Shown piece after piece: positions 49,130-57,138 of a stretch of DNA of 64,000 nt. Under the pieces are notes generated by a model, which worked only from the letters and a program-made list of their open reading frames with translations, ran no database searches and was not told where the DNA came from. Where the stretch lies: the NCBI GenBank assembly GCA_026936335.1, contig JAPMXV010000030.1, positions 62,001 to 126,000 of the forward strand, in the 5' to 3' direction. Made by a program: the position numbers and the translations under genes. The stretch comes from Mantamonas sphyraenae STR306 (Eukaryota; Protista; CRuMs). How positions within the stretch are numbered: position 1 is the first letter of the stretch; every line of letters begins with the position of its first letter.

Positions 49130-52100
49130 TCACACTCCCAGGAAGCGTTTGAGACGCCTGTCGTTGCGCAGCTCCCTGTCCAACTCTTTGAGCTTCTGGA
49201 TAGACTCTGTCTCGTGCGCAATGAAGCGCTGCTCGAGGATATGGATTCGGAAGATGGCTTCGTGGCAATAGCGCACATACTCTGCCTCTTCTTCCTCGTC
49301 CACATTCTCCGGGTTGCGCGAGTAGCCAGCTTGGCGTCGCGCAAGTTCTTGTGTCTCCTCGTCCAGGCGCATCTGGATCAGATTGGCCTTTTCGATCAGG
49401 CGTTCCTTGAGCGCCTTGAGAGCACGGTCCTTGACGCGCAGCGCCGTCTCCCGGTCGGTCGGCAAGCCATCCTTGAAATACACGGCCAGCTTGTCCCTGT
49501 CGTGCGCCTTTGTTTCTTCCTCTTCCTTCTTGCGCCGCACAATCTGCTCTGTGCTGAGCGTGTGCGCGTTGCGCCGAATGTCGTACACGCTCACGTCCAA
49601 CAGCGTCTTGTCGTCCGCATCGATCATGGCCTCCTCTGCATAGCGCTCTTCCAACAGCTGTCTGGCCTGCCTTTGTCCAGCGCGCATCATGGCACCGCAA
49701 TTCTGTTCCGCCTTTTCAAGTTCGCGGATCACGTTCATCAGCTCCTCCTCGTCCTTCAGCTTCATGTACGGGTCTGCCTTGATCTCCTTGCCATCCCACT
49801 CTGTACCAGACTCCTTGGTGAAGATGAGTGCGCTCTCGGTGATGTTTCCCTCGCCCCGATGGTACCACAGGCGCACCCTATCGTCGGCGTAGAAAGCCCG
49901 CTTCGCCACGTCTTCGTGTGCTGGCAGGGCATGGTTGCGCGAAAACTTTTCTGTTGCCTTTACCTGCCTGCTGTTGGTCACGTCAAACGTGCGCATGCGC
50001 TCCCGGCCCTCCAGGTCGTCCACGTGCGACGTGTCAAAGTTGTACCCGCGGAAAGTCAGGTGATCCTCGCGGTCGACGTACAGCTCCACCACACGGCGTG
50101 CCATGTGGTCTTCTCGCGACTGGAGACCATCTTCGCGGTACTCTGTGTAAAACTCGAAGCGCTCCAGCTCGGCGTCGACAAAGATGTGCTTGTGCAGCGC
50201 CTGGTCGCGGCCCGGGGCAAAGATCTCCACCACCTTGCCCTCCTCGGGATAGATGTTGCGTTCTTGCAGCAGATCCAAGCGGTTGGCAAACAGCTGCTGG
50301 ATGCGTGCCAGCTCCGTGTACTCTTCGTCTTCGTACAGCCAGAACTGCTTCACCATGCCGTCTTCACGCAGGTACTCCGCAAACGACTCATACTTGCACT
50401 TGAGATAGTAGGTGACAATGTGGCCCTGCGGTGAGCGCTTCTCAAACGCCACCTCGTCGATGGCCATGTCGTCCTCGTTGACCCAGGACGGCGGCAGCTC
50501 TAGTACCTCGCTGCCCTGCTCGCCGGCCTGCAGCTGGTTCTGTTTGGTTGAATCAAACAGAGAGGAGGCCATGAGCCGGTCCACGTTGCTGCTGATGCCC
50601 ACATTGCTGCTGGTGTCGATCTGTTCGCCAGAAACACCCGCGCCGTCGTCGGCGGCATTGCCTCCCATGCTGCTGCTGCTGCCTGCCTCGCGTCCATAGA
50701 GCTGCTGTGAGCCCTCCTTTGTGTTGATGCTCTCCATAAACAGGTACTCCCACCGAGTGTTGTCGCCCAGTTCGTAGCGGATGTCTTCTACGCGCTCGTG
50801 CGGCTGCATGTTCACCCAGCAGTTGACGTTGTTCCAGATGTTCTCGATGCCCAGGTAGTTGGCATCGCTGGCGCGCGTCACTTTGCCCGTGGACGGCTCG
50901 ATAAACAGATCGTGGGCCACTTCGCGCTTGCCCGACAGCACGAGCACCCAGCAGTGCACCCGCTGGCCCTCCAGCGGATCCCTGACTTCCACCTTGTTTG
51001 CTTCCTCTTCTGCACGCAAACGATCCTCCTCCTCTCGTCGCGCCGCTTCCTCCTCGTCCAGCTCCTTTTGCTTCTGCTGCTCGATAAACTGCGAGCGCAG
51101 CTCCTTCTTGGGCCGCACCGCATACCGGTTCACCTTTTGCTCCTCTTCCTTCTCCTGCACCTCCTCCTTGCCGCCGCCGGACGACGTGCGGGCCTTGTAA
51201 AACGGACACTCCACCTTGCGCAGGTCGCGCTGGGTGATCTCGCGAACCGCGTACCCGTTGACACAGTACGCGTCGTATCCCACGCCGATGAGCAGCGAAC
51301 ACAGAAGCGTGCTCATATCGAATGCGTCTCCGCGTTGCCAACGTAGAGTCGTGGGCGGAGATACCAGAGTCCTCGGCTGTGTGTGGTGTTGTCGTGCGTG
51401 TTGCGGCAGAGTCAGCAAAAGGGCGTCTCAAGAGCCGTTTGACGTCGGAGCCAAACACGGCCGCCTCACGACCTATCCCGACCACCTAGCGGTTCTGATT
51501 GGGCACGGATGGCAAAAATACACGCCTTGCGCACACCAAGGAGAAACAGGACAGGCGCAGGGGGAAGGTAGGCAGGCAAAGGGCAAATTTGAGGAGGCGG
51601 TGCGGGCAAACGTACGACTTCCTTGGGAAACTCGAGGGGCTCGTACACGATGTAGTCGGCGATGAACTTGGCACACGTGTCGAGGTCATAGAGGTCCTTA
51701 AAGGGGATCTGGGTGGGGCGCACGAAGCTGCAGACGAATTTCTGGAGTGGGGTGGTGGCGGACGACGGGGGATGAGCACAACGGTCGCCAGAGACGACAC
51801 CGCGCTTGCCGGGCTGCACTTACCTGGATGCCGGCCTCGTTCATGGGCAGCATGAACGGGATGGGACGGCGCATGTACAGTTCGATGTACTGCTTGATGA
51901 AATCGGTGACATACTCGAGGATCATCTCCTCCTGGACCGTGTTTCGGACGTAGGAGGTGGGCAGCTCGTCGAAGCGGACAGCGTCGACGCGAGCTCGCTT
52001 CTCAGCCTTGCTTGCAACAAGTTCCTCCTCTGTGACCAGTTCCGAGTTCTCATGGGTGTCGATGGCCCAGTCCAAGTGCACCTCGATGCGGTAAGCGGCC

Positions 52101-52132: not shown

Positions 52133-52308
52133 CCTGGATCTTGTTGCCTCGCCAAGCGCAATGGACTGCATCAAACACAACGTTGGAACATCACACGTGT
52201 GTGTGTACTTTTGCGGACACGTACATGTGACGGCAAGGGTGGTCGGACATCTTGCACGGGGCACCGATGCGTTGTCGGCGGCAATTCAGCGGCCCCACTC
52301 CCCCCTCC

Positions 52309-54939
52309 ATGGACGACAAGCTTGCAGTCAAGGCTGAAGTGGCTGCCAAGCGACAGAGGCTGGAACAGCTGCGTGCCAAGCAGCAGGCACTGACAGAGAA
52401 GCGTGTGCGGTTGCGCGCCGGTGTGGCTGACGGAAGCGACGACGACGGAACCGATCTGCTCACTGACGCAAGCATTCTGCGTTCGTCCGAGCAGACGCTG
52501 AAGCAGGCGCTGAAACTGGCCGAGCAAATCCAACAGACCAGTGTGCAAGAAATGGAGGCAGCAGCAGCGGCAGCAGCAGTGGCCAAGACGCACGACGCAG
52601 TCCAAGCAGCCGGCGCTGCTGTCCAGAGCAGCAGCAGCAGCAGTGGCAGCAGCGGCGAGAGTGCAGAGGGCATGCGCATGGTACCCCGTGTAGAAACTAC
52701 AGAGGCGGAAGTACAAGCGGTACGTTTTCCGTGTCTGTGTCTGCGTAGGGACGCAGTTTGCGGTGTGCGTCGTCGCGTGTTCCTGATCAGCCCTCTGACA
52801 CCCGCAAACAACCATCCGTTGCCCGGACATGGGGCGCTCTCGCCGCCGTGGCTTATCGCACACGTCTTTCTGCACACACCCTCCTTCACCCTCTCCACCC
52901 ACAGGGCTCAGTGACATGTGCGTTGAACACAAGAGTGGGAATCCCATCGCAACCCGAAGAAGGGCGGTGGAACCAGACCGCGCAGGCCGTCGTAGACTCA
53001 CACGCACACACAACCCCCCCCCCCCCCACCGCCCTCAGCATATGCATCAGAGGCACAGACCATCGGTCTAGTGCTGCCTGCAAACGAAGAATACGTGGAG
53101 AAATGCCAATTGCTGGCCACTTGGATCAACTCGTTCAGCCTGAAACATCCAGCGTTGAACGACGGCGTACCAGCAAAGGTGACGCAGGATCTGCAGCTGG
53201 AACTGCGTGACGGCGTGCTGCTGTGTCTGCTGGCCACATGGTTTCCAAACGTGGTGGGCAACAAGATCATGCCTCTGATCGAGGTGCAGCCCGAAACAAG
53301 CGAACACAAGCTGGCCAACATCCAGCTGTTCCTCAACGTGTGTCAGTCGCTGGGAGTTGACCGCAGCTTCCTCTTTGCCCCCGACGAGCTGTACCACCAA
53401 ACCAACATGATGGGTGTTGTGGATGCGCTCCTGTTTGTGCGCGACCATGTCAACATGTTGCGCGACTCTGAGGAGGCCGCGGAGGAGGCCGCCGGCGGCA
53501 CAGCCGATCCCGGCGCATCGTCAGCTGGACCCTCGCTGGCCACCACGGTCGGCGTCGATGCAAAGCGTGCTCAGTGGACAAAGGCCGAGCTGGACAACTT
53601 TCGCAACGCGTCGCGCATCATGGAGGTGGCGTTGAACGAGAAGGACCAGGTGCATGCCCTGGATGAGTACACACAAGCCCTTAAGGAGTTGCCCGACAGC
53701 ATGAACGATGAAGAGCAGCGCAGTTTCCACGTGGTGCGTACCTACGAGCACGCAGCGTGTGAGCAGCGCTCTGTGGTGGCGATGGACTGGAGCACAGCGC
53801 ACACACAGGCCGAATTGCTGGTTGCGTACTCGGCACCCAGGGGCATGAGCCAAGCGCAGTACGAGCAGCAGCTTGCAGGCAACCACGACTTTGCACAGGG
53901 ACTCGTGTTGGTGTGGAACAGTGTCACGCAGGACAGGTACGAGCACATGTTGACCTGGAACGCCCCGCTTGCTTCAGCCGCCTTTTCCACACACGGTGAC
54001 TATGCCGTGGTGGCGGGATGCCACGATGGACAGCTGCTCAAATGGGACCTGCAGACGTATCTGGATGGCTATCCGACGACCAAGAGTGCGTTTAGCATGG
54101 ACACGCACGTGTACCCTGTGTTCTGCTTGGACTTTTCCCAGCACCACATCCTTTCCATCTGTACAGGCGGCGCTCTGATCTCGTGGCAGCCGGAGAAAAT
54201 GGCCAACAGCACAGAACCCGACAGGGTAAACCTGCTCGACAGCATCAAGAAGCCGCTCGCTGTGTTGACGCACAGCTTCACACGCAACCGCGACGTGCTC
54301 CTTGTTGGGGCCGAGGATGGCATGCTGTATGCGGTCAACCGTGCAGACAGGGACAAACCTATTGAGGGCGAGTACACAGGGCACAGTGCCGCTCTGACGT
54401 CCATTTCGGCCCATCCCAGGCGCAACGATCTTGTGCTCACAAGCTCCCTGGACTGGTCGTGCATGCTGTGGCGCCTGCTGCCCCAGGGACAAGACACGCC
54501 CGTGTATGTGTTGGATCAGTTTGGCGACAATGTCCTGGATGTGGCCTGGTCTCCTGTCCACGCGTGTGTCTTTGCCACTGCGGATGGCGAGGGCCGCGTC
54601 TGCCTCTGGGACATGCGCCTCCTGGGTCAGACTAGTGAGAAGGACACTCCCGTGGCCGAGTTGCTGGTGGTCCACACTGACGAGCGCGGTTCCCAGCACA
54701 GTGTCCCTGTCAACAGGCTGCTGTGGAGCCCCGATGGAACACAGCTGTTTGCTGGGGACGTCCTCGGGCGCACTCACCACATCCAAGTGGGCGCGCAGTT
54801 CTCCTCTGATGTCTCAAAGCAGACCCTGAGCGACCTTGACTCGGCCGTGGCTGCCCTGCAGTCGCGTTCTGGGGCAGCCGGCACAGCCGACGAGTCGTCG
54901 TCGTCGTCGTCGTCGTCGTCGTCCTCCTCCTCCTCATAA
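52309..54939 (+). CDS. DYNC1I: Cytoplasmic dynein-1 intermediate chain with an inserted calponin-homology domain; intron 52720-52904; probable 1-nt shift in the C-run 53014-53027
   Basis: N-terminal MDDKLAVKAEVAAKRQRLEQLR coiled coil; Roadblock-type helix FRNASRIMEVALNE; WD40 motifs RSVVAMDWS...ELLVAYS, GLVLVWN, HVYPVFC, VGAEDGMLY, LTSSLDWSCMLW, VLDVAWSPVHACVFATADGEGRVCLWD. Confidence 0.85.
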
Positions 54940-55061
54940 CAACGAAATGGACAGCTTCTTTGCTTCGACGGTCAATGCATCGCTCATTTCCCATCCATCA
55001 TTGCGCGCGGAGCAGACCAATCTTCTGCTTCTCTGTTTCGTGCCGCCGTGGAATTCCCCGA

Positions 55062-57138
55062 ATGCTCGCTGCACTGGGCGCATTCTTGCTGGACATCAGC
55101 ACACCCACGCTGTACATACTTGACGTGGTCACAGACATCCTGGTGCTAAACCAATACAGGGAAAACGGATGGGAGGACCTGTACCAGCTGACGTTGACCT
55201 TCATTGTCCTTGTGCCGGTGATCTCCTTTGTGTTCTCCGTGTGGTTTCTGCTCATGTGGACAGCCAACGCATACGACACCATGGACCCCGAGGGCCAGGA
55301 CTCGGCCCTGCGCGACTTTTTCTACAAGCAGTTTGGCCATGATCGGGACGCCTTTGTGCGGCGCATCTACGTGATGATCGCCCTGTCGCCGTTGCTTCCC
55401 CTGTATATTTGGCTGGTCAACTACATGGAACTGATTCACTGGCCCCTGTATGGCAACCACTCGTACGAAGATCTGCGCACAAAGTCGGAGCACGAGGTAA
55501 ACTTCAACACTCTGGGCGGAACCAACGAAGACGACACAGGCGAATTCTTTGCCAACCTGCTGCGAAGGGCCATGCGCGACGTGGGCGTGCTCTTGGAGGT
55601 GCTGTTTGAGGCGTATCCACTCAGTGCCATCCAGCTGTATGTCCTGCTGGACACGCGAAGCGCAAACCCAGTGGCCATTGTCTCGATCCTGGTTTCCTTT
55701 GTCCAGATCATGTCCAAGACCTACTTTCTGGGCATCGACAAGCATGTGCGCCTTAAAGTGCTTTGGGCAGCGACTGCACTCACCAGCGACTGTGTTGGTC
55801 TCCTCACCACTGTTTTCGTGGTGTACTTTGCCGACGAATTCACGGGAGTGTGGTTTGCTGCTTATCTGACCCGCTTTGCCGTACGTGCCCCATCTTTTTC
55901 CTTTGACCCCATTTCCAGTGCACAGGCCTATGGCACCCATCCACACACATTGGAGTGTTCCAGGCATGCATGCACAGCAACTGACGTTCTAGCCCACCCT
56001 CCCCTGCTCGAATCCCTCCGCACAGGCCAATTTCTTCCTGACGATCCTTGTGGTGATGCGCAAACTGCACCGTTTCCTGGATATGTTTGAGACGCAGCGT
56101 TCGTCAAGCAACCGCTATCCGCCCGGGTACAACGGGGAAGGAGATCTCCCGGCAGACTTTCGACCGCCTGTGGATCCCATGGTGCTTGTGTTGCACATGC
56201 TCTCTGCCATCATTGTATTCATGGCATTCCTGGCCATCTGCACATTTGGGGCTCTGTTCCCCATGGCCACAATGGTGGTGCTGTCGCGCGTGACCCTGCT
56301 CTCGGATCGGGAGCGCTTCTCGCACAAGGAGGTGATGGCCGCAAGCGCACGTGCTCACCGTTCAGCTCACTACAACGACCTGGGCGCACGCAACGTGCCT
56401 TTCTCCACCCTGCCGTACACCAAGTACGTGGACATGAACAAGACCTCGCACCTGGGAGTGAGCACCTACCGCAAGGAGAAGATAGTGTCCTACCTGCACG
56501 CCGAATTTACGCCGCAGATCACCACTGCGCAGCTGGACATCTTTGCACCCATGGTGAATCTGAACATCAATGTGCGTCCTCCGCGACCACAGTTCAACAA
56601 CGACCGCTACCGTGCCTTCCGCGCTCGCTTCGATCCGCGCGCATTGCACATCTCGGTGGTGAATCAAGACTTTCTTCGACACCGCGAGGACCTGTCGTTG
56701 CCCACACAAGCCTTCTACTGCTTGTTGGACGCTCGCATGAACCCCAAGTGGTACGCGTGGTTGGCGGCAACGTTGTTCACCGCGTTTGTGTACCTGCTGA
56801 GCCATCTGGTGTGGCCGGTGCTGCTGAATGTCATGTTTTATGTACTGTACGACAGCAGCGCCGGGGTCATGCAGGGCAACAGCAACCACCTGCTCAACTC
56901 ACTGACCCCGGGCGCCGTCTTGTTCAAGGACTTGTTTGGCCTCGCCGGCCTCATTCTGCCGGTTATCTCTGCGGTTTCTCTGTGGCTGATCATCAAACAG
57001 ACCAACCGAATGTTTGTGCGGCGTGTGCACGACCTCGATTGCATCTCGGCTGGTCTGATTGAGCGCCGCCAAGCCGACGCCGATGCTCATCCACGAAACA
57101 GGCGTCGTCTGGCGATTGTGCAAGCCTATCGTCCATGA
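55062..57138 (+). CDS. XK-related (Xkr-like) multipass membrane protein, ~643 aa; intron 55881-56025
   Basis: LYILDVVTDILVLNQY, LLEVLFEAYPLSAIQLY (ExxP motif) and IVSILVSF, with many TM helices; a phase-0 intron joins the two ORFs. Confidence 0.65.

Follow-up and report, generated by a model that had tools for sequence, protein, structure and literature searches.

In cytoplasmic dynein-1, two copies of the intermediate chain (IC) are clamped in parallel by dimers of LC8 and Roadblock, and the IC linker is usually regarded as a disordered scaffold for light chains. To our knowledge, the contacts of dynein-1 with cargo and cortex are made in every studied system by separate adaptors, which bind the light intermediate chain (LIC) and dynactin. 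The Hook domain of Hook1-3 has a fold resembling the calponin-homology (CH) domain and binds a helix of the dynein LIC. Several CH domains of type 3 (Vav, alpha-PIX, calponin) act via protein partners and not via F-actin. Here, we analyze a dynein IC gene of the deep-branching flagellate Mantamonas sphyraenae STR306 (CRuMs), which lies in a stretch of 64,000 nt (assembly GCA_026936335.1, contig JAPMXV010000030.1, positions 62,001 to 126,000 of the forward strand; hereafter the window, to whose numbering coordinates refer unless another contig is named). The gene occupies 52309-54939 on the + strand. In the order also seen in human DYNC1I1/2, yeast Pac11 and Drosophila Sw, it encodes an N-terminal helix, a candidate LC8-type motif, predicted Roadblock-binding helices and a WD40 propeller. 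Unlike the dynein-1 ICs, it has a folded CH domain of ~135 residues in the stretch that links the LC8 site to the Roadblock site; in each of the 150 relatives examined, this linker is disordered. We consider it probable that the gene encodes the sole dynein-1 IC (DYNC1I/Pac11 ortholog) of M. sphyraenae, a fast-evolving protein with a folded type-3 CH domain in the normally disordered LC8-Roadblock linker.

First, we focus on the CH domain. It spans 53086-53496 on the + strand (Pfam core 53110-53421) and matches PF00307 at residues 14-117 of the open reading frame (ORF) 53071-54939 with an E-value of 6e-9 and 36.5 bits, compared to a gathering cut-off of 26. The domain alone retrieves Vav3, alpha-PIX, Vav1, calponin, beta-PIX, transgelin and IQGAP from the PDB sequences (E from 4e-4). 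An AlphaFold2 (AF2) model, for which an alignment of 20 other CH domains from the same genome was used, reaches a predicted local distance difference test score (pLDDT) of 86.8 and a predicted template modeling score of 0.79, and its last helix is extended to ~30 residues. In the AF2 model of exon 2, based on an alignment of IC relatives, the CH part has low confidence because the alignment holds no rows there. When the CH model was compared to known structures with Foldseek, ranks 1-42 were all CH domains, among them transgelin, GAS2-CH3 on F-actin (9kbx), Vav3, alpha-PIX, calponin, IQGAP1 and parvin. The template modeling (TM) score to calponin (1h67) is 0.77, and the probability is 1.00 for calponin, Vav3, alpha-PIX, transgelin and IQGAP1. 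The neighbors found by a protein language model (Atlas clusters) are transgelin-2, CH domains of the CAMSAP/CDC24 type and myophilin. As judged by profile, predicted fold and PDB matches, the domain is a single CH domain of the calponin/Vav/IQGAP type.

In sequence and fold, the Mantamonas domain thus resembles the type-3 single CH domains of calponin, transgelin, Vav1/3, alpha/beta-PIX, IQGAP1 and GAS2. Its host differs from the calponin, Vav, IQGAP and GAS2 hosts in that it is a motor subunit without calponin repeats, DH-PH, GAP-related or GAR domains. In Vav, a single CH domain is followed by an acidic stretch, and the same arrangement occurs in the Mantamonas IC, in which a short acidic linker of ~20 residues (53497-53553, +) follows the CH domain. 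This linker is rich in Ala, Gly and Ser and is predicted to be disordered, as residues 142-156 of the exon-2 model stay below a pLDDT of 50. With Hook, the Mantamonas protein shares a CH-type fold within the dynein-1 machinery, and the structural match is weak (rank 43, E 0.6). Whereas Hook is a separate adaptor, the Mantamonas CH domain belongs to the IC itself, its sequence is of the calponin/Vav type, and no LIC was detected in the genome. The closest CH domain within the genome, also of type 3, is found in a gene on contig 44 (L023; phmmer E 3e-8, 27% identity). With only 27% identity to the nearest genomic CH domain, the insertion in the IC is not a recent copy. The relation to L023 is only distant, and the partner domain there is a different one. 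L023 itself (~301.1-303.0 kb) combines an N-terminal type-3 CH domain (PF00307, 57 bits), a GT-rich intron and a C-terminal AMPK-type carbohydrate-binding module (PF16561, 66 bits).

The part of the protein that follows the CH domain can be assigned by three comparisons. The two exons were searched separately. A WD40 beta-propeller of the dynein-1 IC type (53713-54810, +) is indicated by Pfam WD40 repeats, phmmer, the structural model and a tree. Among PDB sequences, human DYNC1I2 is the best phmmer match (E 1.3e-33, 119.8 bits; ORF residues 173-578 aligned to chain residues 196-578 of the 612-residue isoform), and the next families are DNAI4 with 64.7 bits (6.5e-17) and the dynein-2 IC WDR34 with 37 bits. 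In the exon-2 model the propeller has pLDDT values above 90, and dynein-1 IC chains from cryo-EM structures of dynein-dynactin occupy its first 12 Foldseek ranks (TM score up to 0.90, root-mean-square deviation 2.4 A), ahead of the axonemal ICs. A quick version of a maximum-likelihood tree groups the protein with 56 dynein-1 IC relatives, apart from four IC paralogs of its own genome (SH-aLRT 96). By sequence, predicted structure and tree, the protein is therefore assigned as a cytoplasmic dynein-1 IC. The propeller is followed by a C-terminal helix and a poly-Ser tail (54814-54936, +), with the helix at residues 582-609 of the model and 14 consecutive Ser at the terminus.

The sequence has diverged considerably. 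An exhaustive phmmer search over 1.84 billion representative proteins yields 2080 matches, the best of which has 35% identity and 157 bits, and identity to any relative is only about 30-35%. A word-index protein search returns nothing for the whole frame and three weak matches for the WD part alone, since 5-mers are no longer shared at this degree of divergence. The best-scoring relatives have the consensus of a classic dynein-1 IC (ELExKxxxLxxLR, YxKxxQT, SSxxxERAL and the propeller), and 21 of 76 carry the Pfam family Dynein_IC2. Unlike these canonical ICs, the Mantamonas protein gives no match to Dynein_IC2 when its exons are scanned separately. By its long terminal branch in the tree, the Mantamonas dynein-1 IC is fast-evolving.

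Upstream of the propeller, the elements expected of a dynein-1 IC appear to be largely retained. Exon 1 encodes a charged N-terminal helix, MDDKLAVKAEVAAKRQRLEQLRAKQQ (+ strand), which fits the consensus ELExKxxxLxxLR of 126 and 76 dynein-1 IC relatives, and a possible Tctex-type stretch, RVETTEAEVQAVRFP (+ strand). It also contains Ala/Ser-rich stretches predicted to be disordered, and a Pfam scan of exon 1 gives no family match. The candidate LC8 site, S-Y-A-S-E-A-Q-T (53039-53061, +), can be aligned to YxKxxQT, the consensus among dynein-1 IC relatives, and lies 10 residues upstream of the CH domain; its Ser codon spans the splice junction. Two helices between the acidic linker and the propeller (53554-53652, +) correspond in sequence alignment and model to the Roadblock/LC7-binding region of dynein-1 ICs. 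They start ~30 residues after the CH domain, align with human DYNC1I2 from chain residue 196 and are placed at residues 162-168 and 171-194 of the exon-2 model. The near-invariant columns F176, E185 and R186 of this putative Roadblock-binding region are retained. The order of elements is hence N-terminal helix, LC8-type motif, CH domain, acidic linker, Roadblock helices and propeller. Much of this arrangement had been proposed in the initial annotation, which was made from the letters and their translations. The uninterrupted ORF 53071-54939 that it described is borne out by translation, the CH domain that it called typical agrees with the PF00307 score, the pLDDT and the Foldseek matches, and its placement of this domain between the LC8 site and the Roadblock-binding helix and WD40 propeller of a dynein-1 IC is supported by Pfam and by the alignment with DYNC1I2. 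Its candidate LC8 motif, SEAQT, was correctly positioned before the CH domain and turns out to be too short, as exon 2 starts at 53039 and not at 53071 and the full motif reads SYASEAQT.

The gene consists of two exons, with about 774 codons in total. Exon 1 (52309-52732, +) starts with the ATG at 52309 and has 424 nt, i.e., 141 codons plus 1 nt. It is followed by an intron of 306 nt (52733-53038, +) with the donor GTCTGT, a run of 14 C and the acceptor CTCAG. The acceptor context after the run of C, CCGCCCTCAG, is close to CCGCCCTGCAG, the acceptor of the intron in the LC8 gene of the same genome. Exon 2 (53039-54939, +) is a single open frame that ends with a TGA stop codon (54937-54939). 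From the GTG at 53071, this frame runs for 622 codons without interruption, and upstream of 53071 it stays open to 53041, reading YASEAQTIGLV. Translation places exon 1 and exon 2 in the same frame.

Reads from public runs allow us to compare this gene model to the transcript. The published M. sphyraenae assembly comprises 25.06 Mb in 78 contigs with 59.19% GC, and a transcriptome stems from the same study (PMC10492846). The assembly used here has 25,061,354 bases in 78 contigs, and the G+C content of the window is ~59%. An ER Hsp90 encoded in this genome finds its closest match, at 76% identity, in the EukProt transcriptome of Mantamonas plastica. The stretch is present in four public runs of one study. 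Two of these (X1 and X2) show even depth and contigs that are continuous across the intron, a DNA-like behavior, and their contigs cover 52659-54882 or most of that span. In a third run, X3, depth differs among neighboring genes (130, 36, 24 and 134) and is zero upstream of the ATG, within 52807-53008, and between the IC gene and the next gene. One X3 contig (record 7, 1897 nt) aligns to 52307-52551, 52659-52720 and 53041-54509, and another (record 8) is continuous over 54511-54882. Between the last two blocks, record 7 has 14 letters in place of 320 genomic ones (52721-53040), a deletion of exactly 306 nt that leaves the frame intact. The only GT-AG pair in this span that removes 306 nt has its donor GT at 52733-34 and its acceptor AG at 53037-38, which places the intron at 52733-53038 and gives the exons as modeled. 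Given the depth pattern and the intron-sized deletion, run X3 is RNA-like. In this spliced transcript contig, the sequence coding for the CH domain runs on into the WD part without interruption and is connected in frame to exon 1; the gene is expressed, and the CH domain appears to be retained in the mRNA together with the N-terminal exon, as the architecture proposed in the initial annotation requires. Of the six between-run variants in this frame, five are synonymous, and the CH part contains none. The G+C content at third codon positions is similar in the CH part (0.72) and the WD part (0.76).

Other gene models were considered and rejected. A donor GTACGT at 52720 combined with the acceptor at 53038 would shift the frame and remove 319 nt, compared to the 306 observed. 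As a donor, GTACGT at 52720 looks stronger than the GT at 52733, and alternative use of the two donors, of which that at 52720 breaks the frame, is possible. With an acceptor at 53058, the LC8 motif would be lost, and the contig, which aligns from 53041, speaks against it. Two genes of the kinetoplastid kind with a trans-splice site between them were also discarded, since strands are mixed across the window and the genome is that of Mantamonas.

No earlier description of a CH domain inside the linker of a dynein IC was found in the literature or in the proteins searched, among which close relatives of the Mantamonas IC are absent. For the comparison of architectures, the best 150 of the 2080 dynein-1 IC relatives were used, and none of the 150 aligns over the CH region. 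A phmmer search of these relatives with the Mantamonas CH domain gives nothing better than E 0.38, and a profile built from the CH domains of the genome itself matches the Mantamonas IC at 1e-30 and all relatives at E above 1. In the ten relatives with the longest N-terminal parts, Pfam finds no CH domain in any protein, and one has DUF2152 instead. The nearest Atlas clusters listed for the protein as a whole consist of dynein ICs that lack a CH domain, and none of them combines CH and WD40. A metagenome scan produced 43 pattern matches, none of which is a relative. In the full-text literature searched, on Mantamonas and dynein as well, no description of a dynein IC with a CH domain was found, which accords with the statement in the initial annotation that this architecture was not known to have been described; the M. 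sphyraenae genome paper does not mention dynein (PMC10492846).

As in organisms with a canonical dynein-1 IC, the gene is present in a single copy beside a dynein-1 heavy chain. Searches of the genome with the IC protein and with a dynein-1 IC profile reveal no second DYNC1I-like gene, so that its status as the only DYNC1I of the genome, a point to be verified after the initial annotation, holds. The next match, on contig 44, proves to be DNAI4/IC138 when compared to the PDB, and all remaining matches have lower scores. Contig 2 (147245-157144; L051, L053) encodes the dynein-1 heavy chain, whose motor reaches 2151 bits with Dictyostelium and human DHC1, compared to ~975 for other classes. The tail of this heavy chain has only 70.8 bits on DHC_N1, compared to 510-600 for axonemal heavy chains of the same genome. 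The divergence of the heavy chain tail accompanies the fast-evolving IC. All six heavy chains with a strong DHC_N1 match are axonemal (two outer-arm beta-like, two gamma-like, I1 alpha and I1 beta). The outer-arm heavy chains are apparently duplicated, with two beta-like and two gamma-like tails on contigs 55, 42, 74 and 9 (L041, L043, L044, L046). Two near-identical IC-like WD40 matches lie 8.5 kb apart on contig 53 (348491-349679 and 356992-358179; L011-L014), apparently a tandem duplication of a dynein IC paralog. A complex prediction for the IC propeller and a segment of the dynein-1 heavy chain tail gives a score of 0.05, which carries no weight either way.

Regarding the light chains and other partners, an intron-split LC8 gene (113.7 bits) and Roadblock (38.8 bits) are found in the genome. 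A genome-wide six-frame Pfam search, run without a positive control, gives no match to DLIC (PF05783), Dynactin p150 (PF12455), Dynamitin (PF04912) or Dynactin_p62 (PF05502). As the IC evolves fast, its partners in the same lineage may be unrecognizable, and the LIC and dynactin subunits might thus have diverged beyond recognition rather than been lost. The two CAP-Gly genes that were read encode tubulin cofactor B (TBCB) and a protein with CAP-Gly, transglutaminase and KY-Ig domains (L065:2320-4782, minus strand), neither of which is p150. Three further CAP-Gly loci are located on contigs 55, 45 and 33.

What might a CH domain do in this position? As the IC dimerizes, the two CH domains of one dynein would be adjacent. 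By analogy to known dynein-1, their place in the IC dimer would be at the tail base, flanked by the LC8 and Roadblock clamps, and as a pair they would give the motor a bivalent docking module of its own. Several observations weigh against the reading of the protein as a dynein-1 IC with a functional CH domain. The terminal branch in the tree measures 4.16, about four times the median of 0.95, and functional drift is possible. The LC8-type motif has AQT in place of the canonical TQT, with A for the first T, and mammalian ICs carry SYSKETQT. The CH domain is single and acidic, with an isoelectric point (pI) of about 5.1, and lone type-3 CH domains often fail to bind F-actin alone. Moreover, run X3 is labeled only 'DNA?', and its exon-1 piece already stops at 52720, beside a masked stretch and 12 nt ahead of the donor inferred here.

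The nearest CH domains mix protein binders (Vav, PIX) and F-actin binders (IQGAP1, GAS2, transgelin). The ligand of the Mantamonas domain might well be a protein partner, such as an adaptor, a regulator or a cortical anchor, as is the case for Vav, PIX and the parvin-binding CH domains, and we put the chances of this only somewhat below even. Alternatively, the CH domains could bind F-actin or the actin cortex directly, which would make this dynein-1 a built-in actin-microtubule cross-linker or a cortex-anchored motor. F-actin-binding type-3 CH domains are indeed among the structural neighbors (GAS2-CH3 in 9kbx, IQGAP1, transgelin), and dimerization would supply two CH domains, as in tandem actin-binding domains. 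However, Pfam detects one CH stretch in the protein and no tandem CH1-CH2 of the alpha-actinin/spectrin type, and the best sequence matches, Vav and PIX, are not known to bind actin. Direct F-actin binding, and with it the direct actin-microtubule motor link suggested in the initial annotation, is only one of several options for a lone, acidic type-3 CH domain, conceivable and rather doubtful. That the domain has no specific ligand at all seems unlikely to us.

Two further explanations appear improbable. The CH domain could contact the microtubule lattice, as EB1, NDC80 and CLAMP/SPEF1 do, and provide the dynein tail with a second microtubule contact. CH folds of several families bind microtubules, and the Mantamonas domain has a weak, sub-threshold CAMSAP_CH match (19.8 compared to 27 bits). 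Yet the microtubule-binding profiles NDC80/NUF2 and the CH_2 of CLAMP/SPEF1 are not among the Pfam matches listed, the nearest folds and sequences are of the calponin/Vav type, and the acidic pI, which differs from the basic surfaces of microtubule-binding CH domains, argues weakly in the same direction, leaving this option little credit. It is just as hard to believe that the protein is no longer a dynein-1 subunit and that a divergent IC-like WD40 protein has been re-used elsewhere, e.g., in the flagellum, with the CH domain serving a new role. The very long branch would fit such a re-use, as would the unusual tail of the dynein-1 heavy chain and the position of the IC gene, which is arranged head-to-head with DRC7 among flagellar genes. 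On the other hand, this is the only IC candidate for a conserved dynein-1 heavy chain, the N-terminal helix, LC8-type site and Roadblock helices are kept in canonical order, and structure and tree place the protein with the dynein-1 ICs. Finally, an artifact, in which the CH part stems from a different gene, is lost from the mRNA or reflects a misjoin, is very improbable: the exact splice junction does lie within the stretch masked in the read comparison, but a stop-free single frame links CH and WD, DNA-like contigs of two runs span the region, the RNA-like contig runs without a break over 53041-54509 and on to exon 1 in frame, and the assembly is based on long reads with telomeric repeats at the ends of most contigs (PMC10492846).

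The neighborhood of the gene in the window is as follows. The DRC7 gene (49130-51418, minus strand) encodes MORN_DRC7, DRC7_C and a CEP76-type peptidase-like domain, and its start is ~890 nt apart from that of the IC gene. Downstream (54960-57138, +) lie a frame for an XK-related protein (PF09815) and, after it, another long frame that looks membrane-like. Since they overlap at 56050-56090, both frames probably belong to a single gene that contains a small intron or changes frame.

If the gene encodes a dynein-1 IC with a CH domain, as we consider probable, a folded interaction module has become fixed in the IC linker of a CRuMs lineage close to the base of Amorphea, suggesting that the light chain scaffold can host a module of its own. 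The most far-reaching version, to which we attach only a slim chance, is a dynein-1 without recognizable dynactin or LIC, in which the paired CH domains serve as the motor's own docking module and tie it directly to the actin cortex or to cargo. If this were true, dynein-1 would be coupled to its targets by its own docking module, a way of coupling not known from other eukaryotes. Should the lack of dynactin and LIC be real, the organism would also bear on how dynein-1 is activated without them. M. sphyraenae would thereby offer a natural experiment on the coupling of dynein to its partners.

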